This document shows, piece after piece, positions 34,094-62,048 of a DNA stretch of 64,000 nucleotides (positions within the stretch are counted from its first letter, which is position 1; each line of letters begins with the position of its first letter). The notes under the pieces were generated by a model. The model had not been told where the DNA came from. It worked only from the letters and a program-made list of their open reading frames with translations, and made no database searches. The position numbers were made by a program, and so were the translations under genes. Location of the stretch: positions 124,001 through 188,000 of the IMG/VR virus record IMGVR_UViG_3300009370_001221; one strand, 5' to 3'.

Positions 34094-34393
34094 ATGTGGG
34101 AACCATGGTTATTAATGATAATGTTAAGTGTGGGTCCATTTAATGGACAATACAATGGTGAGAATGATATTTGGTATAATATACGAATGCATTCAGAAGG
34201 AGAATGCCGACAAGCGGCAAGAGATATGATGAGAACACATCGTATATTCCAGCACCTCAATCCTACTTTACATATGGATGTTATATGTAGAAAAGAATTA
34301 CTTGCAGGAACATACAATCAAACAAACTCAAATTTTCCAAAATGTATTAATTATCGTCAATGTCTTGACATGTTTAAAAAAGAATATGACTGA
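34094..34393 (+). CDS. Hypothetical protein, hydrophobic N-terminus, 4 Cys
   Basis: GAGG RBS upstream, fills the operon gap. Confidence 0.5.
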   Translation: MWEPWLLMIMLSVGPFNGQYNGENDIWYNIRMHSEGECRQAARDMMRTHRIFQHLNPTLHMDVICRKELLAGTYNQTNSNFPKCINYRQCLDMFKKEYD

Positions 34394-35312
34394 AATAGTT
34401 GACATTGCTGACTTAGATTGCGTATACTTAACATACGACGAGCCACAAAAAGATGAGTTTTGGGCCAAGATACTAAACATGGTACCTTGGGCAATACACA
34501 TTGATGGTGTATATGGTTCGGATGCCGCCCATAAAGCGGCTGCCAATGCTTGTGATACTGAGCGATTTGTTTTAATAGATGGTGATAATTTACCTGATCC
34601 AGAGTTTTTTAACTTACAACTAACACTAGATGATGTTACTAAACATTGTGTGTTTAGATGGAAGGGTCGTAATGTTATTAACGGACTAATGTATGGCAAT
34701 GGTGGTTTAAGTTGCTGGCCTGTAGACTTTGTTTTAAACATGACTACACATGAAAACACTGATGGTTCTGATGAAACATTAGTAGAGTTTTGTTTTGACG
34801 ATAATTACAGACCAATGCATAACTGCTATAGTACAACATACCCAAATGGCTCAGCATTACACGCATGGCGTGCTGGGTTTAGAGAAGGTGTTAAAATGGT
34901 TTTAAACAAAGGAACTAAACCTGATTTAAAAACATTTGAAGAGCAAGTACATGCTCGCAACTTCGATAACTTATGCATATGGCAAACTGTTGGGCGTGAT
35001 GTTGAGCATGGCATATGGAGTATATACGGCGCACGTTTAGGGACATTTTTAACAATGCTTACTGATTGGGAGCATGTTAATGTAAGGGACTTCAAATATT
35101 TAAATGAAATGTTTAATGCAGAATATAAAGATAAGGATCCTGAAATAGAATCACAAGTAATAGGTGAAATATTACAAAACAAACTAAACATGCCTATATG
35201 TGAGATGAGTGCTGAGGCAAGTGTGTTCTTTAAAGCACATTACAGCAAGCATACAAACTACGATATAATGATACAAGAATTAGATGTAATACGCGGCATT
35301 GAAGGTTGGTAA
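34386..35312 (+). CDS. Phage GT-A-like glycosyltransferase/nucleotidyltransferase-fold protein
   Basis: YLTYDEP...HIDGVYGSDAAHKAAA..CDTERFVLIDGDN (DxD)...YGNGGLSCW...AWRAGFREGVKM. ATG 34386 preferred over the track start 34278. Confidence 0.65.
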   Translation: MTEIVDIADLDCVYLTYDEPQKDEFWAKILNMVPWAIHIDGVYGSDAAHKAAANACDTERFVLIDGDNLPDPEFFNLQLTLDDVTKHCVFRWKGRNVINGLMYGNGGLSCWPVDFVLNMTTHENTDGSDETLVEFCFDDNYRPMHNCYSTTYPNGSALHAWRAGFREGVKMVLNKGTKPDLKTFEEQVHARNFDNLCIWQTVGRDVEHGIWSIYGARLGTFLTMLTDWEHVNVRDFKYLNEMFNAEYKDKDPEIESQVIGEILQNKLNMPICEMSAEASVFFKAHYSKHTNYDIMIQELDVIRGIEGW

Positions 35313-41049: not shown

Positions 41050-41071
41050 TAGACAGGGCCCTAGAATAACG

Positions 41072-42316: not shown

Positions 42317-43667
42317 GGATGATCTCAACCGTGTTCGAAACCCTGCGTTCAAAGCAATTCCTACTCTGTGTTACTTACCGTTTATTCATTTAGAAGCGTC
42401 TGCAATTGGGGACGTAAAGCCTTGTTGTATGACGGAAGGTCCTGTCCTGGATGAAGATCGTAATCCTTATAACTTATCAACTTGTACTCTGAAGGAGGCG
42501 TTTAACTCTCAGCATATGAAACAAATGAGGGCAGACTTTCTGCAAGGTAAAAAGCCTTCTAACTGTAAGAAGTGTTGGGATGAAGAGTCTCAAGGAATAA
42601 CTTCTAAACGTTTAATTTGGGCAGAGCAATTCAGTTTAAAATACCCAGAGTTGGACTACGTTTTTACAAATGAAGTCAATGACTCGAACCTGGTTTATTT
42701 AGACTTAAAACTAGGAACCATTTGCAACTTAAAGTGTCGTATTTGTGGGCCGATGAGTAGTTCAAAGTGGGCGCAGGATGAAATAGATGTCGCTGTTCAG
42801 TTTGAAGGTGTTCAAAAGAGTGAAATAAAGGACTTAAAAGCGTACCAGTGGCAAAAGCAAGGGCAGTGGCCTCGAACAAACGATCGCTTCTGGCGCAACT
42901 TGGAAGAGATTCTGCCGGGAGTGGTTCATTTAGAGTTTACTGGAGGAGAGCCTTGGTTAATTAACGAGCACTTTGAGTTGTTAGAGCAGGCCGTTCGGGA
43001 TGGTTTTGCAGGTCGCATCTACCTTCATTACAACACAAATGGTACGCAGTTGCCTCTCCATGCTTTGGAAAACATTTGGCCTCATTTCAAAGGGGTCAAG
43101 GCTTCCTTTTCTGTGGATGACGTTGGGGAGAAGTTTGAGTACCAACGGTCTGGCGCCAAGTGGGACGAGGTTAATTACAACATTAATTACTTGTGTGCAA
43201 ATAAATTAGAAAATATGGAGACTGAGATTTGTACCACCCTGTCTTTGTTTAATATTGCGTCTCTAATTCATCTCCAGCAGTGGATCAGGGACATTGAAAA
43301 CTTAGACACTTGGTACCTTAATCTCATGCACCAGCCAGAGCACTTTAACATTTCAATTCTACCCGATTGGGCCAAGGACGAGATTGCTTACGGACTCCTC
43401 CATTACAATTGGAACGCGGTTGACAGGCTCACTGCGTTTAAACACCGGGATGAGTTCTTGAAGGTAATTAAAAGTATTGTAGAGTACATGTATTACCATG
43501 AAGTCAGTGACTTGGAGCATGAACGTGCGTATTTGCATGACGTAATTTACAAAATAGACGCGATTCGGGGGCAGAAACTCGTGGAGGTCGACCCCAGATT
43601 GTGCGAATTTCTGGGTTACAGGCACCAAGGGCAGAAAGAAAAATGGAAAGCAAAAAACCAACCGTAA
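42282..43667 (+). CDS. Radical SAM protein with N-terminal SPASM domain (#6)
   Basis: LCYLPFIH...KPCC...NCKKCW, CNLKCRIC, TGGEP. Confidence 0.9.
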   Translation: MKPFRSLVLSIKDDLNRVRNPAFKAIPTLCYLPFIHLEASAIGDVKPCCMTEGPVLDEDRNPYNLSTCTLKEAFNSQHMKQMRADFLQGKKPSNCKKCWDEESQGITSKRLIWAEQFSLKYPELDYVFTNEVNDSNLVYLDLKLGTICNLKCRICGPMSSSKWAQDEIDVAVQFEGVQKSEIKDLKAYQWQKQGQWPRTNDRFWRNLEEILPGVVHLEFTGGEPWLINEHFELLEQAVRDGFAGRIYLHYNTNGTQLPLHALENIWPHFKGVKASFSVDDVGEKFEYQRSGAKWDEVNYNINYLCANKLENMETEICTTLSLFNIASLIHLQQWIRDIENLDTWYLNLMHQPEHFNISILPDWAKDEIAYGLLHYNWNAVDRLTAFKHRDEFLKVIKSIVEYMYYHEVSDLEHERAYLHDVIYKIDAIRGQKLVEVDPRLCEFLGYRHQGQKEKWKAKNQP

Positions 43668-44959
43668 AACCAAAATCGCTCTGTCTTGCCCCTTTCGTGC
43701 ATACCTACATTTCACCACAGTCCGAAAGACGCTTATGTTGTGCGTCTAGAGAGCCGGCCAACGCTTTTAAGCAGTATATCGACACTGATTCTGGCTCTGG
43801 AACGTATAAACCAATGACATTAGAGCAACATTGGAACAGTGACCACATGAAAAGAGTAAGAAAGGCGCACATGAACGGTGACATCATACCCGAATGCCAA
43901 GTGTGTAATGAGAAATTACTCAATACCGACGTATACCGGGACTACTTTTGGCATTTGTTTAAAGAAAAATACAATGACATATGGGAAAAAACGGATGACA
44001 CGGGTTATACTACCATGAAACCTGTCAGCTGGGACTACCGATTTAGTAATTTGTGTAACTTTAAGTGCCGAATGTGTGGTGACATGTTAAGTAGTGCGTG
44101 GGAATCGGAAGAAAAAGTCAATGACATGGTAGATTACAATGACATTTCTAATAATTGGATGCGACCGGACGTAAGAAAAAAGATAAGTGAGTTCCAAAGT
44201 AGTGTAGTTGAGCAAGAATTTAGTGACGCAGTTAATGACCACCGTGTGGAAGAGATATATTGGGTAGGTGGAGAGCCATTAATGATGGAAGAACACTGGC
44301 GTTACATGAAAAAAATTATAGAACTAGGTGACGGAGCAAAAGTTTATGCAAGATACAACACAAACCTGTCAAGAATTGAGTACAAGGGATGTCATTTGTT
44401 TAAAGACATCCTTGACAACATAAGAGATTGGCAAATTTGTGCGTCAATTGACGGAACTAATGTCATTGGTGAGTACATTAGGGATGGTTTACACTATGAC
44501 ACGTGGTTGGAATACTACAAATTAGGAATGGAACACCAAAAAACTCCAAACCAAATGCGTTTGGACTTCACTTTAACCCTTCCGGGCCTTTACGAAGTAA
44601 AAAATATGTTTGACTTGAGTAAAGAATTGGATACTCCACTGTTGGCCAAGGTGACATTTGCATTTACCCCTGACATAATCATGTCTCCCATGTCATTACC
44701 TAGGGGAATACTAAATAGTTTTATAGACGAACTGTTAGAATATTGTCAACCTTATACATGGAAGCAAAAACCTTTAATAGATGTCCTAGAGAACATGAAA
44801 AATCGACCCAACTTCGAGGAACAATGGCCCGAAGAATACGTAAAGGGTGCAAAGGGTGGCAAGAAAAGAGTATTAAGAATAGAAAAAATACGAAACGATA
44901 AAGTTCGTTTAGAAGATATACTTAAGGATCAATTATTATCATGGTGGGAGGCATTATGA
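43643..44959 (+). CDS. Radical SAM protein with N-terminal SPASM domain (#7)
   Basis: LCLAPFVH...RLCC...ECQVC, CNFKCRMC, VGGEP. ATG 43643 preferred over the track start 43601. Confidence 0.9.
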   Translation: MESKKPTVKPKSLCLAPFVHTYISPQSERRLCCASREPANAFKQYIDTDSGSGTYKPMTLEQHWNSDHMKRVRKAHMNGDIIPECQVCNEKLLNTDVYRDYFWHLFKEKYNDIWEKTDDTGYTTMKPVSWDYRFSNLCNFKCRMCGDMLSSAWESEEKVNDMVDYNDISNNWMRPDVRKKISEFQSSVVEQEFSDAVNDHRVEEIYWVGGEPLMMEEHWRYMKKIIELGDGAKVYARYNTNLSRIEYKGCHLFKDILDNIRDWQICASIDGTNVIGEYIRDGLHYDTWLEYYKLGMEHQKTPNQMRLDFTLTLPGLYEVKNMFDLSKELDTPLLAKVTFAFTPDIIMSPMSLPRGILNSFIDELLEYCQPYTWKQKPLIDVLENMKNRPNFEEQWPEEYVKGAKGGKKRVLRIEKIRNDKVRLEDILKDQLLSWWEAL

Positions 44960-46011
44960 ATCACGGAAAAAAGTTTGAGTATGTCTGGCTAGATGGTTAT
45001 ACGCCAGAACCTTCATTAAGAAGTAAAGTAAAAATTGATAACAACGCAGTAAGATGGTCATTTGATGGTTCATCAACGCAACAAGCGGAAGGTGGAAGTT
45101 CAGATTGTATTTTAAATCCTGTTTCACAGTATTATATGCTTGATAGAATTAGACCAGATGCAACAAGACGTATGACAGGCGAAGACATGAGTGCAACTTA
45201 TGTCATGTGTGAGGTTTTAGACTCAGAAAATAAAGCACATCCTAGTAATACACGTCACGCAGTTAAGAATGTTAGTGACGATTGGTGGTTTGGATTTGAA
45301 CAAGAGTACTTTATGTACCAGGATGGACGTCCATTAGGCTGGCCTAAAAAAGGAGAGCCAAGGGCACAAGGAGATTACTACTGTGGTGTAGGTAGTGACA
45401 ATGTTGTTGGTAGAGAAATTGTTGACCGACATACCGAAGCATGTATGAATGCAGAAATTGGCATTACAGGAACCAATGCAGAGGTTGCCTTAGGGCAATG
45501 GGAGTTCCAAGTTTTAGGAAAAGGAGTTAAAGCAGGCGATGACCTTTGGATGGCAAGATATATTTTAATTAAAATTGCTGAAAAACATGGCGTGTCAATT
45601 AACCTTGCACCTAAACCTGTAAAGGGTGACTGGAATGGCACAGGTATGCATACAAATTTCTCTAATAATAACATGAGAAGTTATGGAACGGAGCAATTAA
45701 TGACCAATATGTGTGAAGCATTAGGAAAGGTTCACGAAATTGGCATCAAAGAGTATGGTTCAGACAACGACCAACGTTTAACAGGGTTACATGAAACACA
45801 AAGCATAGATGAATTTAGTTATGGTGTTAGTGATCGCGGTGCAAGTATACGAATTCCAATTTATACTACACAAAATGATTGGCACGGTTACTTGGAAGAT
45901 AGGCGTCCAGCAGGTAATGCAGACCCGTATCGTATTATTAAACATATTACAGATACATGTGACGGTGTTACCAACGGTCAAAAGACTGGATCAATATACG
46001 ACGAAAGGTAA
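44956..46011 (+). CDS. glnII: Glutamine synthetase type II
   Basis: [80 protein letters not shown]. Confidence 0.92.
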
Positions 46012-46022
46012 AGGAAGGTGAC

Positions 46023-46238
46023 ATGAAGAAAGATATACATCCAAAGTATGAAGTAATAAAAGTAAAGTGCCATTGTGGCAATGAATTCGAAACCAGGTCC
46101 ACCTTATGTAAAGATTTATACGTGGAAGTATGCTCTAATTGTCACCCTTTCTATACAGGTGGAGCAGGCAAAGTAAAAGTTGAGGGACGAGTAAGTAAGT
46201 TCCAAGAAAAGTATGGAAGAAAGGACATAAAAAAATGA
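46023..46238 (+). CDS. rpmE: 50S ribosomal protein bL31 (Zn-ribbon, type A)
   Basis: MKKDIHPKY...CHCG...[12 protein letters not shown]...[20 protein letters not shown]. Confidence 0.95.
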
Positions 46239-46966
46239 AATACGTTAAGAATAATATGTTATACGAAGGTAAAGCAAAGAAGATTTGGTCAATCGAAGGG
46301 TTGCAATTTCGTAATCAAGTCATTATGTACTTTAAAGATGATGCTACTGCGTTTAACGCGGAAAAGAAAAGCGAGTTTGATGGCAAAGGTGAACTTAATT
46401 GTTGGATTAGTGACGTACTTTTACGTGCAATGGAACATTTAGGTGTACCGACACACTATGTAGAGAAGATTAGTGACAGAGAAATTGTTGCTGATCACGT
46501 GGCTATAATTCCTATAGAGGTAATTGTACGTAATGTTGCCGCAGGAACATTTTGTAAACGTTATGGTTTAGAAAATGGAACTAAACTTAATCATGCTATT
46601 GTAGAGTATTGTGTTAAAGATGATGATTTAGGTGATCCACCTATAGCATGGGAGGCAATTACAGCATTAGAACCTTCTCGTGAAAAAGAATTAAAAGCAA
46701 TGACTGCAATGACTAGAGATGTTAATAAGTATCTCAAGGCAATTTTTTACACTTTGGGATTAGTGCTAGTAGATTTCAAGTTAGAATTTGGAATTAACCA
46801 ATATGGTGACATAGTTTTAGCAGATGAAATTTGTCCTGACACAATGCGTCTATGGGATGTTAATACAATGCAGTCCTTTGACAAAGATTTGTTTAGGTTT
46901 GACAAAGGTGACTTGTTAGCAGGATACAAGGAAGTTAAAAGGAGGCTAGAAGCATGGCAGGATTAG
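46235..46966 (+). CDS. purC: SAICAR synthetase
   Basis: [59 protein letters not shown]. Confidence 0.95.
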
Positions 46967-47364
46967 TAGGAATTATCATGGGAAGTCCATCCGATAGTGA
47001 ATGCATGAACAACTGTGTTGATATTTTAGAGGAGGAAGATATACCCTTTGACTATATTGTAGCATCAGCACACAGAGATCCGGAGAAAGTTAAACAATGG
47101 GTAGAAGAAGCAGAAGAAAGAGGCAACAGAATAATTATTGCCGCCGCTGGTATGGCGGCCGCATTGCCTGGCGTATGCGCCGCATACACAAGTCTGCCAG
47201 TTATTGGCGTACCCATGTCGTCCGAACTAAATGGCATGGATAGTTTGTTAAGTATTTCACAAATGCCAAAGGGTGTACCAGTTGCATGTATGTCTATTGG
47301 CAAAGCAGGTGCAATAAATGCCGCGTATTTGTCAAAACGAATACTAGATTTACTAGATGCTTAA
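46954..47364 (+). CDS. purE: N5-CAIR mutase (AIR carboxylase catalytic subunit)
   Basis: IIMGSPSD, ASAHRDP, IAAAGMAAALPGVCAA, PVIGVP, DSLLSISQMPKGVPVA. Confidence 0.95.
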   Translation: MAGLVGIIMGSPSDSECMNNCVDILEEEDIPFDYIVASAHRDPEKVKQWVEEAEERGNRIIIAAAGMAAALPGVCAAYTSLPVIGVPMSSELNGMDSLLSISQMPKGVPVACMSIGKAGAINAAYLSKRILDLLDA

Positions 47365-47797
47365 AGATAAAATTACGCAAGACATGAAGGACGCAATGCG
47401 TTCAAAGGACAAGCAAAGGTTGGAAGCAATCCGTTTGCTACGTGCCGCTATTCAAAGACGTGAAGTTGATGATCGTGCTGAGTTAGACGAAGCAGGAGTA
47501 ATAAGTGTCATTGAAAAAATGGTAAAACAAGGCAAAGACTCCATTGAACAATTTGCAAAGGGTAATAGGCAAGACCTTGTTGCTAAAGAAGAGTCTACTT
47601 TGGTAGTAATAGAGGAATATTTGCCTAAACAATTAAGCGAAGCAGAAGTAGATGCGTTAATAGACGAAGCCTTTAAGGAAACTGGCGCAAAAACAATTAA
47701 AGAGATGGGTAAAGTAATGGGTTGGATAAAACCCAAAGGGCAAGGAAAGGTAGACATGGGTGCTGTTAGTGCTAAAATTAAAAAAAGGTTAACATGA
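47357..47797 (+). CDS. yqeY: GatB/YqeY domain protein
   Basis: DMKDAMRSKD...SIEQFAKGNRQDLVAKE...YLPKQLSEAEV...MGKVMG. Confidence 0.92.
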   Translation: MLKDKITQDMKDAMRSKDKQRLEAIRLLRAAIQRREVDDRAELDEAGVISVIEKMVKQGKDSIEQFAKGNRQDLVAKEESTLVVIEEYLPKQLSEAEVDALIDEAFKETGAKTIKEMGKVMGWIKPKGQGKVDMGAVSAKIKKRLT

Positions 47798-50895: not shown

Positions 50896-51134
50896 ACATA
50901 TTAGATTTACACGGTTATAACTTACAAGATGCATACAACGAAACATTAAGTTTTCTCAGAGATATGCACAAAGACAAAGAGAAAAAAGTAAAAGTTATTA
51001 CTGGTAAAGGAGCAATTGCAAAAGAATTCCCTTTTTGGATAGAAAAAAGTTCTTATATAAAAAGGTTTGAACCAACAAATGATGGAGGTTGTTGGTACAT
51101 CACTATGGCTGATCAATACCGACCAACAATGTAA
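50892..51134 (+). CDS. Stand-alone Smr domain protein
   Basis: LDLHG...A...FL...VKVITGKG Smr signature in 80 aa. Confidence 0.8.
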   Translation: MNILDLHGYNLQDAYNETLSFLRDMHKDKEKKVKVITGKGAIAKEFPFWIEKSSYIKRFEPTNDGGCWYITMADQYRPTM

Positions 51135-51721
51135 TGATTTTTACCAATGGTGATAGTTTTACTTACGGAGATGAATTAGATAAACCGTATAGCGAAGCAT
51201 GGCCGTATATTTTATCACAGATGCTTAATTTAGACGTAGTAAATTTTGGTGAAAATGGTAAAGATAATGCTGGTATAGTACAAACAACAAAAGATTATTG
51301 GTCTATTACTGGTAGTTTTTCTGAAGCCTTCCCGCCTACAATTTGGATTATACAGTGGTCAACATTCAGACGATTTAACGACAACCCCCCAATAGATGTA
51401 ATATTACAAAAATTAGACAAGCAATATTTGCTTGATTTATACTTTGTACATGTAAGAGACTTACAAGATTGGTTTGAAGAGCATAATTTTTCTTATATAA
51501 TGTTTAATGGTTTTGATAATGAAAAATACATAAGTGATAGTGATTCAGAGTTTAAGCAACTAGTTGACGATAAGTATTTTATAGGCTGGCCAGATGAAGC
51601 AGTAGTAAATTGGGTATATGAATATGAACATGGTCCTAGAGGCCACCCAAGAGCAGAAGGCCATAGAAGAATAGCGGAAATACTCTATGAAAATATTAGG
51701 AGTAAGTTGCGGTTTCCATGA
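51134..51721 (+). CDS. SGNH/GDSL-like protein (#3)
   Basis: TNGDSFTYGDEL, GKDN, GHPRAEGHRRIA. Confidence 0.7.
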   Translation: MIFTNGDSFTYGDELDKPYSEAWPYILSQMLNLDVVNFGENGKDNAGIVQTTKDYWSITGSFSEAFPPTIWIIQWSTFRRFNDNPPIDVILQKLDKQYLLDLYFVHVRDLQDWFEEHNFSYIMFNGFDNEKYISDSDSEFKQLVDDKYFIGWPDEAVVNWVYEYEHGPRGHPRAEGHRRIAEILYENIRSKLRFP

Positions 51722-53288
51722 TGCGGCAATTAGTTTAATAGATGACGGTGAAATATTGTTCGCTGGACACGCAGAACGTTATAGCAAAGTAAAACACGAT
51801 AAAGAATTAAACAGCAAGTTACTTAACAACGCATTAGATTATGGTTACCCCGATTTTGTCTCATACTATGAAAATCCGTGGCTTAAGAAAACTAGACAGT
51901 TGTATTCCGGGCAATGGAAAGACTTGTTTACAGAGTTTAGCATTAAAAAGAAAATAGCATACAACACAGGGTTTAGATGGAACAAAACTAGTTTTAATTA
52001 TCATAATCATCACCACAGCCACGCCGCCGCAGGCTTCCAAACAAGTCCTTTTAATGATGCCACTGTAGTAGTAATAGATGCTATTGGAGAATGGGATTGT
52101 ATTACGTTATGGAATGCATATTATGATGGTAATGGCCAAGCCTGCTATGAAAGAATTTGGGGAGCAAAGTATCCTAATAGTGTAGGACTGTTTTACAGTG
52201 CGATGACGCAAAAAGTTGGCTTGCGGCCGTTAGATGAAGAGTATATTTTAATGGGTATGGCAGCATATGGAGAGCCAATTTATAATAGAGAAATACTAGA
52301 TAAGTTTTGGAAAATTGGCGGTCCGAAAATACTTCGTGCAAGAGAAAACTTACATTTAGGCACTGATTGGCACAGTGGCCCGCCATGGACGTCACAAGAT
52401 GACGATATGGTAGAACAAGACCAATACGATATAGCCGCTTCTGCTCAAGTTGCACTAGAACAAGTTGTAACATACATAATGAATTTTGCACGGCGTATTG
52501 GCAAGTCTCCTAATTTAGTTTACATGGGAGGTGTTGCGTTAAATTGCGTTTGTAATACTAATATTTCCCGCATTTGGGAGGATGTTTGGATTATGCCCAA
52601 TCCTGGTGATGCTGGCAGTAGTTTAGGCGCGGCCGCCCTAACATATGGTAAGAAACTAAACTGGCGAGGGCCGTTCCTGGGGTATGATATAAAAGGTGAA
52701 TACCCAGATGGAGAAATTATAAAAGAATTAATGTCCTCACGTCAAATTGTGGGCGTTGCCAACGGTAGAGCGGAGTTTGGTCCAAGGGCACTAGGCAATA
52801 GGACATTGTTTGCTGATCCACGCGGGCCAGACATTAAAGATAAAGTAAATGAGATAAAGCGTCGGCAAAAGTTTAGGCCGTTTGCTCCAATGATACTCGA
52901 AGAGAGATCAGAAGAGTACTTTGAAATGCCACTAGTAACTACACCAGCACATCCTTCTACACGCCCTTCTTTTTCCGTACATAAGTCAGGTCAACCGCAT
53001 CATTTTACAATGACACACATTCCAAGTCCGTTTATGCAGTATGTAGGACGGTGTAGACAGCCAGATAAGTTTCCGGCGATTGTACATAAGGATGGCACAA
53101 GCAGAGTGCAGACGGTAGGGCCAAATGATAATCCTAATGTACGTAAATTGCTTAAGATGTGGGAATATTATACAGGTTGTCCAATGTTGTTAAATACTAG
53201 TTTAAACATTAGAGGCGAGCCAATGGTAAATGACATTGAAGACGCCAAGCGTTTTACTGAACTATATGGTGTAAAAGTATGCACATAA
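51687..53288 (+). CDS. Carbamoyltransferase (NodU/CmcH/TobZ family)
   Basis: ILGVSCGFHDAA, HHHSHAAA, VIDAIGE, MGMAAYG, GGVALNC, PGDAGSSLGAA, EFGPRALGNR, FRPFAP, HKDGTSRVQTV, LLNTSLN. Confidence 0.93.
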   Translation: MKILGVSCGFHDAAISLIDDGEILFAGHAERYSKVKHDKELNSKLLNNALDYGYPDFVSYYENPWLKKTRQLYSGQWKDLFTEFSIKKKIAYNTGFRWNKTSFNYHNHHHSHAAAGFQTSPFNDATVVVIDAIGEWDCITLWNAYYDGNGQACYERIWGAKYPNSVGLFYSAMTQKVGLRPLDEEYILMGMAAYGEPIYNREILDKFWKIGGPKILRARENLHLGTDWHSGPPWTSQDDDMVEQDQYDIAASAQVALEQVVTYIMNFARRIGKSPNLVYMGGVALNCVCNTNISRIWEDVWIMPNPGDAGSSLGAAALTYGKKLNWRGPFLGYDIKGEYPDGEIIKELMSSRQIVGVANGRAEFGPRALGNRTLFADPRGPDIKDKVNEIKRRQKFRPFAPMILEERSEEYFEMPLVTTPAHPSTRPSFSVHKSGQPHHFTMTHIPSPFMQYVGRCRQPDKFPAIVHKDGTSRVQTVGPNDNPNVRKLLKMWEYYTGCPMLLNTSLNIRGEPMVNDIEDAKRFTELYGVKVCT

Positions 53289-53331: not shown

Positions 53332-54021
53332 ATGACCTCCATTGCATTTTGTGGTGATAGTTTTTGTAAAATATATGACGAACAACCATATCTGGGATGG
53401 CCAAATTTATTATGGCACCATTATGATGCTAACATTGTATGTGACGGTATGGCCGGCTGTGCTTTAATTCATTCGTATGAAAAGCTTTTACCAGTGGTAG
53501 ATAAAGCAGATTATGTAATATTTTGTATTACAGATCCTGCTAGGTTACCAAATAGAGAAGCATTGCCAATGTTTTACAATCCAAGGCCCTGGATTGGATG
53601 CTCCGGGGACCGCGGCCCACCTTCTACAATCGAACAATCCGCTCTTAAATATTATAAACATATTTTTTATGAAGAATATCATAACATGGCACAAAAAGGT
53701 ATATTAATGCAAATAGATGAATTAATGGTTCAAAAACAAAAAAAATGTATTTGGTTTCCTTGTTTTGAAAATAGTATGCAAGAATATATACCACAAAGTG
53801 GACCAATTGCTGATATTAGCTTAGGAGAAATTAGCTTCAATGAATATAAAAATAAAGGTTTTTCTAAGAAAAAATACAGTGATGTAAAAATAGAAGATGA
53901 TAGAATATGTCATTTGAGTGAAGAAAATAATATTAAGATGGCTAATTTAATTATTGATATAATTAAAAATGATAATTTTAATCCTAAAGAAATAAAACTG
54001 GGAGATTATTTTAATGGCTAA
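53332..54021 (+). CDS. SGNH/GDSL-like protein (#4, divergent)
   Basis: AFCGDSFC, C-terminal CHLSEENNIKMA. Confidence 0.55.
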   Translation: MTSIAFCGDSFCKIYDEQPYLGWPNLLWHHYDANIVCDGMAGCALIHSYEKLLPVVDKADYVIFCITDPARLPNREALPMFYNPRPWIGCSGDRGPPSTIEQSALKYYKHIFYEEYHNMAQKGILMQIDELMVQKQKKCIWFPCFENSMQEYIPQSGPIADISLGEISFNEYKNKGFSKKKYSDVKIEDDRICHLSEENNIKMANLIIDIIKNDNFNPKEIKLGDYFNG

Positions 54022-54706
54022 AAACGGAAAGAGTGATGTTAGTAAACATGATTTTGAAAAACTAGCAAATAGTAAGAAAAGTAAAGACAGAACACCATTC
54101 CCTGCAGGGAAGGTTCCTGAACGTGAATCAGAAGATACTATAGTTATCTATGGTGCTAAACGTGCTGGTAATCATTACTTACAGAGTTATTTTCATTCAA
54201 TTGGTGAGAAGTGTGAGTTTAGGCATGAAGCAGCTCATGCTAAAAAGTTATTTTTAACAAAAGGCAAACAGTTAATTATACTTGTACGTAATCCAGAAGA
54301 CCAGATAATATCTAATACCTATAGTATGTTTAATGCTGATAAAGATGGGTATGGTGTTGGTACAAAAGATCGACCATTAAAAGATTTATCTGCCCAGGCT
54401 ATACCTTATCAAGTAGTAGGACAAGCATGTGAATATTTAAAAAAATTCACAGACACTATGATTACATTAACTATGTCATATCCATTTCAATTCGTATTGT
54501 ATGATACCATAATACAGAATAAATTAAATAGTATATACACGCAACGTGATCCACAGTACTATAAAGATTATATATTAAATTACGACGATATTTTAATAAT
54601 GTTAGCAAATAGCGATATTTGTGAATATTGTTTAACACATTGGCGTGCTTATAACTTACAACAAACTGTCTACTATCCAGAATTAGCAAATGTTAATAAA
54701 TCGTAA
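54014..54706 (+). CDS. Sulfotransferase-like P-loop protein
   Basis: YGAKRAGNHYL (5'-PSB-like) and LVRNPEDQIIS (3'-PB-like). Confidence 0.55.
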   Translation: MAKNGKSDVSKHDFEKLANSKKSKDRTPFPAGKVPERESEDTIVIYGAKRAGNHYLQSYFHSIGEKCEFRHEAAHAKKLFLTKGKQLIILVRNPEDQIISNTYSMFNADKDGYGVGTKDRPLKDLSAQAIPYQVVGQACEYLKKFTDTMITLTMSYPFQFVLYDTIIQNKLNSIYTQRDPQYYKDYILNYDDILIMLANSDICEYCLTHWRAYNLQQTVYYPELANVNKS

Positions 54707-55871
54707 AATTCTCTCAAATACTACGGCAACTAAATTCCAAGTAAGAAGAAAATATAGAGAACGTAAAGGTCCTTTATTAGAAAAAGATTATACATGTTGG
54801 TATCCACATCGTAGTCTAACAATTGATCAACTAGGAGAATGTTATATATGTACATGTGAAGCATGGTTACCTTATTCTGTTGGAAATATTTTAGAATTCG
54901 ATGATCTTACCGACATTTGGACTAATAATATTGCTAGAAAACTCCAAAACAATACTAAAACCGGCACAACATTTAAATTTTGTGATACTTCAATTTGTAA
55001 TCCGTGGTCAAAATCGTATCAACAAGCAAGAGCGTTACCATATCAAATTGCAATTTGTACAGATGATAGTTGTAATTTGCGATGCCCTAGTTGTCGTACT
55101 GATCTGATTCATTTTAATAAAGGTCCAATATACGAAAAAAGAAAATTATATACTGATAGAATTACATCGTTAATGAAAGACTTTGATCTACCTGTTTCGT
55201 GTGCTTTGGGTGGTAGTGGAGAGATTTTTAGTTCTAAAATTTTGTCTGATGTTTTGTATAATTATGAGCCAAATGATAAACATCGATTTAAAATTAAAAC
55301 TAATGGAACTCTTATAGATAACCGAGTTAAAGATAGTCCAATTATGCAAAAACTTTCAGAATTTACAATCAGTATTGATGCTGGGAGCAAATCAGTATAT
55401 GATGTTGTAAGACCTCCGGCTAACTGGAATAAATTAAGATCAAATTTAGATTTTTTAAGGGAAAATAATTTTCAATTATCTTTTAATTTTGTCCTCCAAA
55501 AAGCCAATTTATATGATGTAATTAATTTTGCAGATTTATGTGAGCATTATGGTGCTATAGGACACTATGAAGGTATAAATGATTGGGGTACATGGAATTA
55601 CGAAACTTATTTAAAACAAAGAATCCATCAACCTGAAGATGAATTATATTCCGAGTGGAATAAAATTAAAGAACAACTTCTTCAGCATTCATGGAGAGAT
55701 TATTTAATATTTGCTTCTAATATTGATACAGAAAACCAATTTACATATGAGAGATTATATTCCAAACACCCAAACAAGAATTATTTACCGCTAGGATACA
55801 ATGAAAATGATGGGACATACCACAGTGAAAGACATCCGATGCTAGGTCTTAAATGGACATTAGATAATTAA
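54690..55871 (+). CDS. Radical SAM protein with N-terminal SPASM-like domain (#8)
   Basis: CWYPHRSLTIDQLGECYICTC, CNLRCPSC, GGSGE. Confidence 0.88.
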   Translation: MLINRKILSNTTATKFQVRRKYRERKGPLLEKDYTCWYPHRSLTIDQLGECYICTCEAWLPYSVGNILEFDDLTDIWTNNIARKLQNNTKTGTTFKFCDTSICNPWSKSYQQARALPYQIAICTDDSCNLRCPSCRTDLIHFNKGPIYEKRKLYTDRITSLMKDFDLPVSCALGGSGEIFSSKILSDVLYNYEPNDKHRFKIKTNGTLIDNRVKDSPIMQKLSEFTISIDAGSKSVYDVVRPPANWNKLRSNLDFLRENNFQLSFNFVLQKANLYDVINFADLCEHYGAIGHYEGINDWGTWNYETYLKQRIHQPEDELYSEWNKIKEQLLQHSWRDYLIFASNIDTENQFTYERLYSKHPNKNYLPLGYNENDGTYHSERHPMLGLKWTLDN

Positions 55872-55877: not shown

Positions 55878-58800
55878 ATGTACGACAAAATATATAGGAA
55901 AGATTATGATATTCAACAGGCGTCCGAAAGATGTAAAACGAGACATTATTGGTACATTGATAATGGGGTTGATTGTAGTGATTTTGATTTTAATTGGACT
56001 CCTGTTCCATGGGAATCTAGATTTACTCACGTATTCCCTAGTAAATGGCAACGTGACGGAGGTATTAGGTTAGTAAACAAAGACTATCCTAATGGCGATG
56101 TTAAATTTAATAAAGAAAAGCAAGTTAGTAGAGTTCCCATTAAAGATAAATGGGTACTTGATCCTGATACTGATTATATCCATTTTGATTTTAGCTGGCA
56201 TCCAGATACATTTACAGGGGTATATACTTATGTCTTCCCATCACAGTGGCAACGTGATGGAGGTACTAGGTATGTAATAGAGCCTGACGCTCCTATTAAA
56301 TACGTATCTGATCAAGTAACAGTAAGAATACCAAATAAGGATAATTGGAGGCTGAACAAATATACTGACTATACTAATTTCGACTTTAGTTGGCATCCAG
56401 ATTTATCGCAAGGCGTGTATAATTATATATTCCCATCACAGTGGCAACGTGATGGCGGCACACAATATATGGTTGACCGGCTCGCTTTTCCTAAGTACGT
56501 ATCCGATCAAATAACAAAACGCATTAGTGATTTAAGATATTGGACAATACCAGATGATGTAGATACTGATGCGTTTGACTTTAGTTGGCATCCTGATCCA
56601 GCACATGGATCATGGACATACGTTTTTCCTTCATTATGGCAACGTAATAGTAGCGTAACGTATCGTATAATGCCAGACGCACCAAAAAAATATGTAAGTG
56701 ATCAAGTAATACGTCCACTACCTAATAAAAAAGATTGGATAATTCCTGACAATATAGATGAGGATAGTTTTGATTTTAGTTGGATGCCTGACCCAGATGA
56801 TCCTCCATACATATATGTTTTTGGCACACAATGGCAAAAGGATGGCGGCCCAATATATAAAGTAGAAGGTGCTACTGAAATATCTTACTGTACTGAACAA
56901 TATGCAAAAGCAGTACCGGGTAGAATGCGTCACTGGCATATAACACCAACAGGCACAGACTATAGTTCATTTGATTTTAGTTGGCATCCAGAAGAGGCAC
57001 AAAAAGACTATAAACACATATTTGGTACACAATGGCAAAGAACAAGTCCTATATATTACTATAGCGGAAGTGATCCTAACCCTAAAGTAAATTACGTAAG
57101 TGACCAACGTGTTACAATGAAAAGTAATGCGTTGCCACGTTACACAATAGAAACAACACTAGAAGATTTAATAGAATCACATCCTGAAGAACGCTTTTGG
57201 GCGTTAAATGCAGAGATGGATTATGACAAGTTTGATTTTAGTTGGCATCCTGATTTAAGTCAAATGGATTATGTCCATGTGTTTGGTTCTCAGTGGCAAA
57301 AGCATAGTCAAACATACTATGTTAATGCTCCTGCTTATTTGAAAGGTAATACCCACTTAAATTTTGTGGGTGATCAAAAGGTAGTAGCGAATAGTACTCT
57401 AGATATATTTTATATGGACAGAGGTGGTGAAGGAAGTAAGGAACGCTTCAATTCACTGGCTCTGAGACACTCTCAGACGCTCAAGACACGCTACTTTGGT
57501 AATACTCGCGATACTTTACTGCGTTGTGCTAAAAAATGCAAGACAAAGCGTTTTTGGGCGGTGTCAAGTGAGAATAGTTATGGTGATTTTAATTTTGACT
57601 GGCATTGTGAGCCATGGCAAAATGGTATGCTCCATGTGTTTGGTTCAAAATGGAATAAATGGAGTAATACGTTCCTTGTAAATGCTGATGACTTTATTCG
57701 TACGTTTGATTGGGCAGATAAAATAGAGGATGTGTATAATTTAAACTTCGTAGAGGATCAACTAGTAACTACACTGGATGATTTAAACAATATTATATTT
57801 TTGGACTTTGGTAACAGTAATGCTGAAGAAGCATATGAAACTGTATACAGTAAGCACCCAAGAGTTAAACGTATACGCTTTTTTGACAACTATTTGGATA
57901 CATTTAAGAGAATAATGGCCAAAGCCGATACAGATTATTTTTGGGTCACTAGTAGCATATGCGATTATAGCCAATTTGACTTTAGTTGGCAACCGGAGCC
58001 GTGGCAGGACACAATGTTACACACATTCCAAAGCGGAGAACAGAAGTTTGGTGATACTTTCTATGTTAATAAGGCACATGCAGAGGAACAGTTAAAAGAT
58101 ATTAAGTTATTGGACTGGTATGACAAAGTAAACTATTGTAATGAGCAAATAGTAACAAGAACAGAGTGGCCTGAAGTAATATATGACACAGATTTAGTTA
58201 CTGCTATAAAAGAACACACATTTGAGTCACCTTATGTTGCTTTTAAACATAGATCAATGGCCGAATATAAAACAAATTACGACCCAAGTGTTTGGCGCTC
58301 AGAAGATCGCTCTTTACACGTACTTTCACAGAGTGGATCTGTGTCCGTAGTACCGAAAGACTGTAAAGAGCAAATTTCAAGGCAAGTTTATGACTATCCC
58401 TATATCTTGCGCCACGAAGGCATTTATATGCCCGATAAACCACAAGATATAGTGTTTATTTCATATGATGAAAAGAATGCCCAGGAAAACTATGAAGTGT
58501 TATTAAAATCCTTTCCATATGCTAAACGAGTTGATGGCGTAGAGGGTATGCTTAATGCTATGCAAGAAGCGGCACGTATATGTGAAACTCCATACTTTTA
58601 TGCTGTATTTGCTAAAACAGTATTGCATGAAAACTTTAAATTCAACTACCAACCCGATTGGTTATCTAATCCTAAAAACTATGTCTTTTATGCGTATAAT
58701 CCTGTGTTAGACTATAGTTATGGACACGGTAGTATTGTTATGTACGATGCAGAGTGGCTTAAGGATGTTACAGAGGCAGAATTAGATATAGATTTTACAA

Positions 58801-59099
58801 CTACACACGAAATAGAAGTAATACCTGAGGTAAGTTGTATAAACGTATTTGACAGTGAATATAGTGCGTGGCGCACAGCGTTTAGAGAAGCATATAAGTT
58901 ATGTGCCAGTAATACTGTAGAGGACAAGTATAGATTAAAGTTATGGACTACAAAAGACAATACAGAGTTTGGAGAGTATAGTAAGCAAGGTGCTTTATGT
59001 GGTGTAGAACATTACAGCAAAATACAAGATGATTTTAATATTACTGACTGGAAGTGGTTAAGGAAGCAATTTGATCTATGGTATTCGCGACCTGTATAG
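55878..59099 (+). CDS. 1073-aa protein with 9 DFSWHPD-type repeats and degenerate GT-A-like domains
   Basis: Repeats FDFSWHPD..Y..F.(S/T)QWQRDGG about every 65 aa. C-terminal FISYDE...RVDGVEG...AWRTAFRE is homologous to 34386-35312. Confidence 0.75.
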   Translation: MYDKIYRKDYDIQQASERCKTRHYWYIDNGVDCSDFDFNWTPVPWESRFTHVFPSKWQRDGGIRLVNKDYPNGDVKFNKEKQVSRVPIKDKWVLDPDTDYIHFDFSWHPDTFTGVYTYVFPSQWQRDGGTRYVIEPDAPIKYVSDQVTVRIPNKDNWRLNKYTDYTNFDFSWHPDLSQGVYNYIFPSQWQRDGGTQYMVDRLAFPKYVSDQITKRISDLRYWTIPDDVDTDAFDFSWHPDPAHGSWTYVFPSLWQRNSSVTYRIMPDAPKKYVSDQVIRPLPNKKDWIIPDNIDEDSFDFSWMPDPDDPPYIYVFGTQWQKDGGPIYKVEGATEISYCTEQYAKAVPGRMRHWHITPTGTDYSSFDFSWHPEEAQKDYKHIFGTQWQRTSPIYYYSGSDPNPKVNYVSDQRVTMKSNALPRYTIETTLEDLIESHPEERFWALNAEMDYDKFDFSWHPDLSQMDYVHVFGSQWQKHSQTYYVNAPAYLKGNTHLNFVGDQKVVANSTLDIFYMDRGGEGSKERFNSLALRHSQTLKTRYFGNTRDTLLRCAKKCKTKRFWAVSSENSYGDFNFDWHCEPWQNGMLHVFGSKWNKWSNTFLVNADDFIRTFDWADKIEDVYNLNFVEDQLVTTLDDLNNIIFLDFGNSNAEEAYETVYSKHPRVKRIRFFDNYLDTFKRIMAKADTDYFWVTSSICDYSQFDFSWQPEPWQDTMLHTFQSGEQKFGDTFYVNKAHAEEQLKDIKLLDWYDKVNYCNEQIVTRTEWPEVIYDTDLVTAIKEHTFESPYVAFKHRSMAEYKTNYDPSVWRSEDRSLHVLSQSGSVSVVPKDCKEQISRQVYDYPYILRHEGIYMPDKPQDIVFISYDEKNAQENYEVLLKSFPYAKRVDGVEGMLNAMQEAARICETPYFYAVFAKTVLHENFKFNYQPDWLSNPKNYVFYAYNPVLDYSYGHGSIVMYDAEWLKDVTEAELDIDFTTTHEIEVIPEVSCINVFDSEYSAWRTAFREAYKLCASNTVEDKYRLKLWTTKDNTEFGEYSKQGALCGVEHYSKIQDDFNITDWKWLRKQFDLWYSRPV

Positions 59100-59952
59100 C
59101 ATTAGTAACATCTGATTTTGGTGTTTCGCGTGTTTCCACGCAATCTATAAAGTGTCCTAATTCGTTTTCTAAAGGCGTTCTTCCTGTATAAGGAATAACT
59201 TCAGTTTGTATATCTTTATTCAACCTATTGTTTTCTAACTTACTATGATTAGTAATAGTTAAAGTTTCCTCGTCAGTATCCCATATAGCACAGCCTTTGG
59301 TGCCTATTACTGTAACTATTCGTTTACGCATAGGACTATACCAACCAACATCTACTTCTACAGAAACACCGTAACAATGCCCAGTAAAATGTATTCTGTC
59401 ATAAGTTGTAGCATAGTTATTACTTAAATTATAAACGTTAACGTCCTTTACAACTATGGAATTATCCATAAGGTACTGTATAATACTAATGTCATGTGGT
59501 GCTAAACTTAATAATGGTGTTGTTTTAGTTTGATATATGCCCCAATTAAGACGCTCTGTTTTAATATGTCTTATCTCACCTAATACGCCGTCTGTTATTA
59601 GTTGTTTTAGTGTTATACAATGGGGATGATATAAAAATATATGTCCTACCATTAAAACTTGATCATCTTGTAATATGTCGCGTAACTCTTTACATTGCTC
59701 TAATGTTTCTGCTAACGGTTTTTCAACGTAAACATCATGGCCGTTTAGTATTAGTTTTCTTGCTGATGTATAATGATCCCATAATGGTGTAGCAAGTATA
59801 ACAGGGTCTAACGTGTCTATTTCATCAATAGTTTGTCCGTTTTTAATGTCTATAATTTGTGGTACTATGCCCTGCCTTTCAATAGCATGGGCCACCTTTG
59901 TACCCCAGTAGCCTGCGCCAACTAACCAAATTTTATTAATATCAAAAGCCAT
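59041..59952 (-). CDS. Gfo/Idh/MocA family NAD-dependent oxidoreductase (WlbA/WbpB-like sugar 3-dehydrogenase)
   Basis: VGAGYWG, ATP..DH, VYVEKP, LMVGH, DHxxHD-type LAPHDI. Confidence 0.85.
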   Translation of the reverse strand: MAFDINKIWLVGAGYWGTKVAHAIERQGIVPQIIDIKNGQTIDEIDTLDPVILATPLWDHYTSARKLILNGHDVYVEKPLAETLEQCKELRDILQDDQVLMVGHIFLYHPHCITLKQLITDGVLGEIRHIKTERLNWGIYQTKTTPLLSLAPHDISIIQYLMDNSIVVKDVNVYNLSNNYATTYDRIHFTGHCYGVSVEVDVGWYSPMRKRIVTVIGTKGCAIWDTDEETLTITNHSKLENNRLNKDIQTEVIPYTGRTPLENELGHFIDCVETRETPKSDVTNAIQVANTIDQIASLTTSSQ

Positions 59953-61075
59953 TTGCTGTTTCTATAATATAATCTTGTTGTTCGTCTGTTAAACTATGAT
60001 AGCAAGGTAGACTTACTATGCTATGAGCAACTCTTTCTGCATTTGGACAATTACCCGGATAATTTTCATAAGCAGGTTGTTTTGTCATTGGAACACGATA
60101 ATGTACATTACATTGTATGCCGTTATTGTTCATATAGCTTATAAAATCATCCCTGTATTGCTCAAGTAATGTACCAAAGTATCCAGGAATTTCCCGCATC
60201 ATTATAACGTAAACATACCAGGTATGTGTATTATCAGGAAGTGCTTGTGGTGTTACAAACTTATCTTGATCAAGCATTTCATTATATTTTGTGCATATTT
60301 CACGTTTACGTTCAAGCCAATTGGCCAAATAAGGTAATTTTGCCTCTACAATTTTTGCTTGTATGTTATCTATTCTAGCATTATAACCCATTGTGTGATA
60401 TAACCACTTATCATTCCTGCCATGATCTCTATACATTCGTGCCTTGTCAATTAGTCCTTTCTTGCCAGTAATAGCACCAGCGTCACCCATCGCACCTAAA
60501 TTTTTAACAGGATTAAAACTAAAACAAGTTAAGTCTACTAAATTACCAACACGTTGTCCTTTATATTTTGCACCAAAACTTTGTGCGGCATCTTCAATTA
60601 ACCGCAAGCCATGATAATCGTCACTAGAATGGTTATCTACTATCTCTTTTAGTTTATCAATATCTGGTGTTTGCCCATAAGTGTCTACAAACAATATTGC
60701 TCGAGTCTTAGTGTTTATTGCTTCTTCTACTTTGTTTACATCAATTAAATAATTATGGTCTATATCCACAAATACAGGAGTAGCACCTACTTGTAAAATT
60801 GCTTCAGCCGTGCTTACAAAAGTATGTGGTGTAGTAATTATTTCTTGTCCGGTCCAGTCCAATTGAAGTGATAACAATGCACACAATAAAGCAGTTGATC
60901 CACTACCTGTTGAAGCACATGCTTCAGCACCTGTGTATTCTGCCATAACGTTTTCAAAATTATCTGTTACTGGACCAGTAATAAAATGACTGCCGTCTAT
61001 ACAATATTGTATAGCGGCGTCTATATCTTCTTTTGCTTCAATATATTGACTTTTAAGATCTGTAAAAGGAATCAT
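59942..61075 (-). CDS. DegT/DnrJ/EryC1/StrS PLP-dependent sugar aminotransferase
   Basis: MIPFTDLKSQY, IEDAAQSFG, SFNPVKNLGAMGDAG, GYNARID, SLPCY. Confidence 0.93.
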   Translation of the reverse strand: MIPFTDLKSQYIEAKEDIDAAIQYCIDGSHFITGPVTDNFENVMAEYTGAEACASTGSGSTALLCALLSLQLDWTGQEIITTPHTFVSTAEAILQVGATPVFVDIDHNYLIDVNKVEEAINTKTRAILFVDTYGQTPDIDKLKEIVDNHSSDDYHGLRLIEDAAQSFGAKYKGQRVGNLVDLTCFSFNPVKNLGAMGDAGAITGKKGLIDKARMYRDHGRNDKWLYHTMGYNARIDNIQAKIVEAKLPYLANWLERKREICTKYNEMLDQDKFVTPQALPDNTHTWYVYVIMMREIPGYFGTLLEQYRDDFISYMNNNGIQCNVHYRVPMTKQPAYENYPGNCPNAERVAHSIVSLPCYHSLTDEQQDYIIETANGF

Positions 61076-62048
61076 CTTTATCTCTTAACCATTCCCAAGT
61101 ATCAACAAACCCTTCTTCAATGTCTATTATGGGATCATATCCGAGTAAGTTTCTTGCTTTAGTATTACTACATGTGCCACGTTTACCAAACGCTTCGTTA
61201 TGCTCTGCTATTTTTATTTGACTATTGCTGTTAGTTACTTCAATTGCTACTGTTGCCGCTTCAACTAGAGTGCGGCTTCTTTCTCTTGTAATGTTGAATG
61301 TTTCATCAGCGGCCCTATCGTTTAATACACATTGCACCATACCTTTTATAAAGTCATCCATGTGTGTAAAGTCTATACTTGAGTCTCCATTAACATATAT
61401 AGTTTCATTGTTTGCGGCCTGCAATAAAAATTTCGGAACAACTCTGTCTATTATATCACGTGGTCCATATACAGCACTCGGACGTACAATAGTATATTCT
61501 ACATTGTGTTCGTTACAGTATCGTTTAACAATGCCTTCACTCGCTAGTTTTAATATACCATAATCGCTTTTGGGTTGCATTTGATTCCAATCTTCTCTCA
61601 TGCCATAAAAATGTCCGCCTGATGGCCAATCACCATATACCATACTGCTACTAACGTGGATAAATCGTTTAATGATACCTTGACTACCATATAATAAATT
61701 GTATACGCCTTTAACAAGGGAGTCGCAAGCCATTACGGGGTCATATTGTACTAATTTTACGCGAGAGAATGCCGCTAGGTTAACTATAATGTCTGGTTCG
61801 TATTTCTCTATTACCCTAGCAATACCTTTAGTGTTTTTAATATTTTCGTGTACAGGTGCCCGTAGTTTAGTTTGACTCATAAACTTTTGGCGATTAGAGG
61901 TCGTTATCCAAAACTCTCTAGGAGGGATTACGCCGTAATCAGTCTGTATATCTACAATAAGGATAGAGTGGCCAAGTGTTTCTAGTGCAACGGATAAATT
62001 ATGCCCTATAAACCCTGCGCCACCAGCAATTAGTATTTTCATAGCCAA
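61053..62048 (-). CDS. NAD-dependent nucleotide-sugar epimerase/dehydratase (extended SDR)
   Basis: AGGAGFIG, SSSMVYG, YGILK (YxxxK), RPSAVYGP, DFTHMDD. Confidence 0.9.
   Translation of the reverse strand: MAMKILIAGGAGFIGHNLSVALETLGHSILIVDIQTDYGVIPPREFWITTSNRQKFMSQTKLRAPVHENIKNTKGIARVIEKYEPDIIVNLAAFSRVKLVQYDPVMACDSLVKGVYNLLYGSQGIIKRFIHVSSSMVYGDWPSGGHFYGMREDWNQMQPKSDYGILKLASEGIVKRYCNEHNVEYTIVRPSAVYGPRDIIDRVVPKFLLQAANNETIYVNGDSSIDFTHMDDFIKGMVQCVLNDRAADETFNITRERSRTLVEAATVAIEVTNSNSQIKIAEHNEAFGKRGTCSNTKARNLLGYDPIIDIEEGFVDTWEWLRDKDDSFYRS

Follow-up and report, generated by a model that had tools for sequence, protein, structure and literature searches.

P0001, a phage protein built from graded copies of the centre of its own GT-A-like domain, with F-A-K in place of the DxD motif

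Architecture of P0001

The open reading frame (ORF) P0001 (55878..59099) encodes a repeat protein of 1073 amino acids (aa) whose C-terminal domain is related to glycosyltransferases (GTs). It lies in a window of 64,000 nucleotides (nt), bases 124001-188000 of the 235-kb IMG/VR virus record IMGVR_UViG_3300009370_001221, which is estimated to be 67% complete. Coordinates are those of the window, and features lie on the plus strand unless stated otherwise. From N- to C-terminus the protein consists of repeat 1 with a helix before it, repeats 2-6, repeat 7 again with a helix, two larger modules (8 and 9), a linker and one complete domain. Nine F[DN]F[SDN]W motifs, at residues 36, 103, 168, 233, 298, 365, 452, 571 and 700, are spaced by 67, 65, 65, 65, 67, 87, 119 and 129 aa. 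An initial annotation of the locus had counted nine copies with an early period of about 65 aa, and all nine are significant: repeat 2 matches every unit in phmmer (domain E 5e-4 to 2e-44), and a family-wide hidden Markov model (HMM), built from 400 units of relatives, likewise finds nine of nine (E 4e-19 to 1e-32), far beyond chance.

The seven short repeats occupy residues 15-490 (55920..57347) with a core period of 65 aa. Their units cover residues 15-70, 83-142, 147-202, 212-272, 277-337, 345-400 and 432-488; repeats 2-6 are five 65-aa units, and units 1 and 7 retain the preceding helix. Module 8 (residues 506-640; 57393..57797) joins the alpha/beta half of a GT-A-like domain to repeat unit 8, and module 9 (residues 639-760; 57792..58157) joins a second alpha/beta part to repeat unit 9. 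The two modules match each other at E 5e-20 and the first half of the C-terminal domain matches residues 631-712, in module 9, at E 1e-6, so the three alpha/beta segments proposed earlier are real; a profile of the C-terminal domain also matches residues 500-591 and 634-720. The N-terminus does echo the glycosyltransferase motif as had been suggested, residues 13-69 matching module 8 at E 6e-11 with the helix before the repeat included. The linker (residues 761-839, about 80 aa; 58158..58394) is conserved in length across the family and has no detectable homology to the modules; a degenerate tenth module within it was considered and dropped (hhalign against module 9, probability 1.7%). The remainder, residues 840-1073 (58395..59096), is the predicted GT-A-fold domain with a helical C-terminal part.

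Because the units are only 18-58% identical in amino acids (37-66% in DNA) and the gene holds no DNA-level tandem repeats, the array is judged to be old and maintained at the protein level. P0001 is acidic, with an isoelectric point (pI) of 5.2 for the whole protein and 4.8-5.5 for every segment, and its Phe/Trp/Tyr content is 11-18% per segment and 17-18% for the whole ORF. This composition would fit sugar binding slightly better than DNA binding. No N-terminal hydrophobic segment is visible in the translation.

Predicted fold of the C-terminal domain and of the array

An AlphaFold2 (AF2) model of the C-terminal domain, made from a 114-sequence alignment, has a predicted local distance difference test score (pLDDT) of 92.3 and a predicted TM score (pTM) of 0.86. 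It displays a GT-A fold, that is, a Rossmann-like alpha/beta/alpha sandwich. Foldseek against the PDB returned almost exclusively GT-A glycosyltransferases and GT-A-like nucleotidyltransferases, with PcManGT first (E 8.8e-5), followed by SunS, polypeptide GalNAc-transferases (ppGalNAc-Ts), WrtF, RmlT and RmlA. In a structure search independent of Foldseek (VIA), B4GALNT1 was the best match (Z 10.5), and the best 50 matches were all GT-A-fold glycosyltransferases or nucleotidyltransferases (Z 10.5-7.5; model residues 13-153; 122-215 aligned). Against viral models, two family members, each named 'Uncharacterized protein, uncultured Caudovirales phage', ranked first and were followed mostly by viral glycosyltransferases. 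The GT-A-like fold that had been read from the letters is thus supported by a confident model and by its structural neighbours.

Residues 1-505, which hold the array, were folded with 91 equivalent seven-unit stretches; the model has many short beta strands (pLDDT 85.8, pTM 0.63). Foldseek against the PDB gave nothing with E <1 for this 505-residue model, which exceeds the size advised for the search. In VIA the sole matches were weak ones (Z <=4.0) of residues 414-505 to GT-A-fold glycosyltransferases and nucleotidyltransferases; nothing covered residues 20-410, the model again being above the advised size. Atlas returned only viral hypothetical clusters and no named cluster. The 65-aa array is thus, as modelled, without a recognised structural relative in these searches; with the oversized model, the 65-aa unit showed neither a family match nor the recognisable fold of a lectin or carbohydrate-binding module (CBM). 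At the sequence level P0001 matches no Pfam, NCBIfam or PHROG family, and searches of PDB sequences, Pfam, PHROG and NCBIfam with P0001 and the domain profile gave nothing usable. The best Pfam lead was a DxD-bearing paralog against PF13641 (E 0.038, 14 bits against a cutoff of 27).

A coordinated exchange at the DxD position

Relatives of the DxD type carry that motif where the central strand ends; P0001 has F911-A912-K913 there (58608..58616), so the loss of DxD noticed earlier stands. We aligned 324 distinct F-[AG]-K domains (FAK type) and 102 D-x-D domains (DxD type) to one profile, and use domain numbering within the C-terminal domain, in which position 74 is K913 and position 165 is E1004. 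F-[AG]-K replaces DxD throughout the FAK type, with Lys in all 324 relatives. Position 72 is D in the DxD type (0.99) and F in the FAK type (0.89); position 74 is D (1.00) against K (1.00); position 56 is H (0.94) against Y/M; and position 115 is K (0.97) against I/V. H56, D72 and D74 are probable metal ligands. Common to both types at >=90% are D18, S23, E26, A29, G51, A55, N102, Y109, F163, R164, E165, W184, G199 and A200. Nine residues are 100% conserved in the 324 FAK-type sequences: E865, N941, Y948, G949, D972, R1003, E1004, K1007 and W1023 (E26, N102, Y109, G110, D133, R164, E165, K168 and W184 in domain numbering). Their conservation is tighter in the FAK type than in the DxD type, and most of them, including E865, N941, Y948, R1003 and E1004, are common to DxD-type relatives. 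GT-A glycosyltransferases have an acidic catalytic base (xED) where the alphaF helix starts, and a G-loop; possible counterparts in P0001 would be the invariant E1004, which lies on helix 155-170 (domain numbering), and the invariant Y948-G949.

Own-genome paralogs, except one with E-G-D, and all bacterial homologs carry D-[GA]-D; P0001 lacks this metal-binding motif of GT-A glycosyltransferases. Relaxed conservation of the former site, as in COSMC, is likewise absent, since only H56, D72, D74 and K115 change. The exchange appears specific and coordinated with the rest held fixed, unlike the erosion expected of a dead site. Two precedents are described for the fold: GT14 and prokaryotic GT6 enzymes no longer have DxD and no longer need a metal, the cation being replaced by basic side chains in GT14, and COSMC, which turned into a chaperone, has neither DxD nor xED left (PMC7185993). 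By analogy, the FAK-type pattern resembles the GT14/GT6 case more than the COSMC case, and the invariance of the basic residues K913, R1003 and K1007 is consistent with a metal-independent GT-A type. The initial annotation had held that the protein may be catalytically dead. This is not borne out, given a Lys in 324 of 324 relatives, nine residues at 100%, a coordinated exchange and arrays in DxD-type relatives as well; an intact alternative catalytic site, which was to speak against a dead enzyme, is what the conservation pattern by itself suggests. A third motif state, N-A-K, occurs at the DxD position of a homolog in a metagenome-assembled genome (MAG) labelled Fischerella sp. (L040).

Origin of the repeat

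The unit HMM matches residues 910-938 within the C-terminal domain of P0001 (E 0.006), and in most relatives it finds the equivalent part of the domain, always 225 aa beyond the last module. This segment starts at the DxD-bearing strand, runs through the F.F...PD loop and the Y.F strand, and in the repeats sometimes begins at the helix before the DxD-bearing strand. Because the Pro-Asp and Tyr-x-Phe that define the repeat are conserved in the C-terminal domain of the FAK subfamily and not in that of the DxD-type subfamily, the repeat is, by the alignment, an internal duplicate of the centre of P0001's own C-terminal domain. The earlier proposal that the repeat came from the segment following the DxD motif therefore holds for the source, a GT-like central segment, and fails for the boundary, as the repeat starts at the DxD strand itself. 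Across 334 family copies, modules 8 and 9 have lost E26, G51, A55 and K74 and kept the aromatic/Pro core; because those residues are gone, both modules are non-catalytic.

Family, distribution and paralogs

A word-index search found 2929 relatives at E <=0.001. Among the 120 relatives listed, lengths run from 943 to 1871 aa, the upper value being set by the search and not by the family, and none has a meaningful functional name; the domain is also present in proteins of ~430 aa. An exhaustive profile search returned 1604 cluster representatives at E <=0.001 (800 below 1e-30; 214-2248 aa), which puts the family at no fewer than 1600 clusters at 50% identity. The contigs that carry cluster members reach 428 kb, and the source-named members are called hypothetical. 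The architecture is constant, n units of 65-70 aa followed by spacings of ~87, 119-130, 122-134 and 225, and the number of units lies between 7 and 26. Gain or loss of entire 65-aa units distinguishes relatives 70-90% identical to P0001, which have 7 to 12 copies. Pfam gave no match for ten members that have extra sequence beyond the domain. In isolated phages the one tblastn match was a stand-alone domain, encoded among unannotated genes of Ralstonia phage RsoM2USA.

FAK-type members are seen only on viral or phage-like contigs, and the FAK-type matches in prokaryotic records are only a handful of probable phage contigs binned into MAGs. The DxD type is represented in the window by a stand-alone paralog of 344 aa with D-G-D (34278..35312). 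The C-terminal domain matches this ORF at E 8e-9 with 29% identity (window 34413-35126), and ..LIDGD.. of the paralog aligns with ..AVFAK.. of P0001, which upholds the alignment to a glycosyltransferase at 34386-35312, DxD replaced, that was reported before. Two further stand-alone paralogs in the same phage record have D-G-D (245 aa) and E-G-D (314 aa). Homologs in prokaryotic genome records of Photorhabdus and of Bdellovibrionales and alphaproteobacterial MAGs are single-domain proteins of ~235-275 aa, all of the DxD type. The Photorhabdus asymbiotica DSM 15149 homolog (234 aa, P0423) lies between a GT4 gene and two GT2 genes, with a nucleotidyltransferase, an ABC transporter and a HlyD-type protein downstream in the apparent operon (L032 6771-14291), which may be a secreted glycoconjugate or glycopeptide system. 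Because this homolog sits among GT4 and GT2 genes, the bacterial DxD-type parent family seems to behave like a glycosyltransferase.

Arrays also precede DxD-type domains. In the 1735-aa P0280, a V-V-D-G-D domain follows fifteen units of ~100 aa (helix, strand, loop, strands), in which two or more sequence types alternate. P0327 and P0321 are further DxD-type members with arrays, and seven or eight such units occur in other proteins of this kind. These point to a second, independent style of the same construction. Because DxD-type domains also follow arrays, the array would be an accessory of a catalytic-type domain and not a by-product of domain death. In another arrangement, seen in P0276-P0279, P0282, P0283, P0285 and P0296, a complete DxD-type domain occurs twice in a row, in one case at residues 6-247 and 305-530.

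Gene neighbourhood and conserved synteny

The plus-strand genes upstream of P0001 include a DUF6071 gene, a GDSL-like gene and a NodU/CmcH-type carbamoyltransferase (51687..53288); distant relatives keep the carbamoyltransferase upstream of the repeat protein as well. A radical S-adenosylmethionine (SAM)/SPASM gene (54690..55871) ends 7 nt before the P0001 start. Downstream, on the minus strand and convergent, are a GFO/IDH/MocA oxidoreductase, a DegT-type aminotransferase and a nucleoside diphosphate (NDP)-sugar 4,6-dehydratase/epimerase (59041..62048), and beyond these a ThyX gene.

We compared four relatives (L005-L008; 32-44% identity) on contigs of 215-352 kb. Each of the four has a carbamoyltransferase directly or almost directly upstream and radical SAM genes (B12-type or SPASM) in the vicinity; most also have DegT, dehydratase/epimerase or GT4 genes close by. 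In L008 the homolog is flanked by the same sugar-nucleotide genes (GFO/IDH/MocA, DegT, dehydratase) and by five similar radical SAM genes. Because the carbamoyltransferase and the sugar genes remain syntenic, this block is the best evidence that P0001 acts in building or tailoring a modified glycan.

The window also encodes T4-type SbcCD genes, a baseplate gene and a 4850-aa tail-fibre-like ORF, and its SbcC-like protein is 47% identical to the counterpart in the Pseudomonas jumbo phage PA5oct and relatives. On account of these genes the source is a large tailed phage, known only from metagenomes.

Discussion

Our preferred reading, to which we give about an even chance, is that P0001 is a rewired, probably metal-independent, glycan-building transferase with an array that binds or spaces its substrate. 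The FAK-type family would descend from a DxD-type GT-A glycosyltransferase family that is also found in bacteria. The C-terminal domain would still be functional, most likely as a metal-independent transferase using a nucleotide-activated sugar; the probable metal set His56/Asp72/Asp74 has been exchanged for Tyr/Met, Phe and the invariant Lys, and at the diphosphate Lys913, with R1003 and K1007, would stand in for the cation. Ahead of this domain the protein consists of graded duplicates of the domain's central segment, from two alpha/beta-plus-segment modules through a helix-plus-segment unit to 65-aa segment-only units; the modules have lost the catalytic-type residues and kept the aromatic/Pro core. 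The array, predicted to be continuous and beta-rich, may serve as an accessory to which a polymeric substrate, probably a glycan, is bound or along which it is spaced, and gaining or losing whole units would adjust the array's length. During infection the block of carbamoyltransferase, radical SAM and sugar genes would build or decorate a modified glycan, possible targets being virion proteins such as the giant fibre, or the host envelope. A bolder form of this proposal, rather unlikely in our estimate, makes P0001 a phage-specific metal-independent GT-A class in which truncated copies of its own acceptor-side subdomain, arranged in tandem and variable in number, form a rigid ruler or processivity track that sets the length or pattern of a carbamoylated and heavily tailored glycan. 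Were it true, gain and loss of whole units would be a quick way to change the glycan made in jumbo-phage infection.

Several points weigh against a rewired transferase. The structural matches are distant (~10% identity, TM 0.35-0.48, Foldseek E ~1e-4, VIA Z ~8-10), and no Pfam GT family, PF00535 and PF13641 included, was matched; because these matches are distant and include nucleotidyltransferases, the chemistry could differ from glycosyl transfer. K913 would lie at the diphosphate site by virtue of aligning with the second Asp of DxD, and ligand-binding pseudoenzymes can also keep conserved pockets. A binding role for the short-repeat array is a guess, because no structural match to the array was found.

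The same observations can be read, in line with the initial annotation, as those of a pseudoenzyme, in which the C-terminal domain would be dead and the whole protein, as a multivalent lectin or scaffold, would offer substrate to the DxD-type paralogs or act as their chaperone. The domain has neither DxD nor the conserved His56, modules 8 and 9 as well as the short units are plainly not catalytic, the same phage has three DxD/ExD paralogs, and COSMC, chaperone for T-synthase, is a precedent (PMC7185993). We nevertheless regard this as doubtful: COSMC lost xED along with DxD, whereas here each of the 324 sequences retains the other invariant polar residues as well as the Lys that came in their company, arrays are equally present in DxD-type relatives, and the paralog at 34278 sits 21 kb away. 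That P0001 is instead a virion structural or decoration protein, the beta-rich array serving as fibre or rod and the C-terminal domain as glycan-binding tip, seems unlikely. It would suit a gene located downstream of the baseplate and giant-fibre module on the same strand, an array predicted as a continuous ordered structure, and a variation by whole units in close relatives that is typical of host-interaction proteins. Yet neither Foldseek nor VIA gave a structural match to a fibre, Ig-like or decoration fold, PHROG gave no match, and the constant neighbours in distant relatives are biosynthetic enzymes, not structural genes.

Two further proposals start from the neighbours. SPASM enzymes usually act on peptides, and the window has eight radical SAM paralogs, most with SPASM and one ending just upstream of P0001, with five more in L008; P0001 might accordingly be a substrate or template whose repeated, conserved Trp/Lys/Asp motifs are cross-linked or otherwise modified after translation, like a multi-core precursor of a ribosomally synthesized and post-translationally modified peptide (RiPP). 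This is improbable, as more distant relatives have B12-type radical SAM genes and few or no adjoining SPASM genes, and as the units derive from an enzyme fold and are predicted with high confidence to be folded domains. Phage glycosyltransferases that glycosylate DNA are known (10.1101/2023.12.21.572611), and P0001 could be such an enzyme acting on hypermodified phage bases. ThyX is nearby, and L008 has thymidylate-synthase-like, dihydrofolate reductase (DHFR) and dCMP-deaminase genes. Such nucleotide-metabolism neighbours are, however, ordinary for T4-like phages, the protein is acidic in every segment (pI 4.8-5.5), and no hydroxymethylase or TET-like gene was seen within the window, which makes this reading very improbable.

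Among known systems, GT-A enzymes of the GT2 kind (SpsA 1h7l, PcManGT 6yv7, SunS 7msp, B4GALNT1 9h6j) have the alpha/beta/alpha fold in common with P0001 over model residues 13-153. Its first strand ends in a ..SYDE loop, like the ..YNE loop of GT2, DxD-type relatives have DxD at the end of the central strand, and bacterial homologs lie within GT operons. P0001 differs from them by its ~10% identity, the lack of a Pfam GT match, F-A-K for DxD, and a helical C-terminal part of its own with an invariant F-R-E..K motif. With the metal-independent GT-A enzymes (GT14 C2GnT-L, BoGT6a, WrtF) it shares the fold without DxD, a basic side chain as plausible substitute for the cation, and a motif lost within an otherwise conserved site; the likeness is one of fold and motif, and those enzymes have no self-derived array. 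COSMC (C1GALT1C1, GT31) is likewise GT-A-derived, has lost DxD and coexists with DxD-bearing paralogs, but it also lost xED and has no conserved site, whereas P0001 keeps its remaining invariant residues. Viral multi-domain GTs (PBCV-1 A064R 2p6w; Mimivirus R655 and R699) bring GT-A domains into viruses whose genomes have their own sugar-nucleotide pathway; in VIA, A064R and R655 reached Z 7.8-7.9, and R699 matched only the repeat-array model (Z 3.3). They combine different complete catalytic domains, whereas P0001 combines one complete domain with truncated copies of itself.

P0001 represents a GT-A-derived but undescribed family of unusual construction, in which copies of the centre of a complete enzyme domain stand ahead of that domain and become shorter with distance from it. 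The gene is present in thousands of aquatic jumbo-phage genomes, and every source-named copy is called hypothetical. The replacement of a metal site (H, D, D) by a lysine with the rest of the pocket fixed is a natural experiment, and the conserved carbamoyltransferase, radical SAM and amino-sugar neighbours point to a phage-encoded glycan pathway. If P0001 is active, it would be a new GT-A family without DxD and would open a way to study glycosylation by large phages, whether of themselves or of their hosts.

Other features of the window

The 4850-aa ORF (13517-28069) matches YHYH, FG-GAP and the T7 tail-fibre N-terminal domain and is probably a giant tail fibre or adhesin; it lies directly upstream of the glycan-type gene block, on the same strand. 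Family scans place the eight radical SAM paralogs at 35306-44956 and 54690-55871. Seven are upstream of the one that adjoins P0001, on the same strand, and four of these seven have a significant SPASM match. In all five significant matches SPASM is N-terminal to the radical SAM core (~30-110 against ~130-310), which we take to be the reverse of the usual order. Auxiliary metabolic genes at 44941-47797 encode a glutamine-synthetase-like protein, SAICAR synthetase (purC), AIR carboxylase (purE) and YqeY. Three small ORFs (54014-54706, 53332-54021 and 51134-51721), the first two of them between the carbamoyltransferase and the repeat gene, are possible glycan-tailoring enzymes, to be taken as leads only: one weakly resembles a sulfotransferase (E 0.02, short of the Pfam cutoff), another a GDSL protein (E 5e-4, likewise short of the cutoff), and one opens with a GDS-type motif without a family match. 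A link of the source phage to the 'moraphage' lineage was considered: the paper on that lineage (PMC12619734) mentions core glycosyltransferases, and its examined passages contain 'repeat' once and make no mention of radical SAM or carbamoyltransferase. The 3' ends of the repeat gene and of the convergent GFO/IDH/MocA gene overlap by 59 nt (59041-59099).

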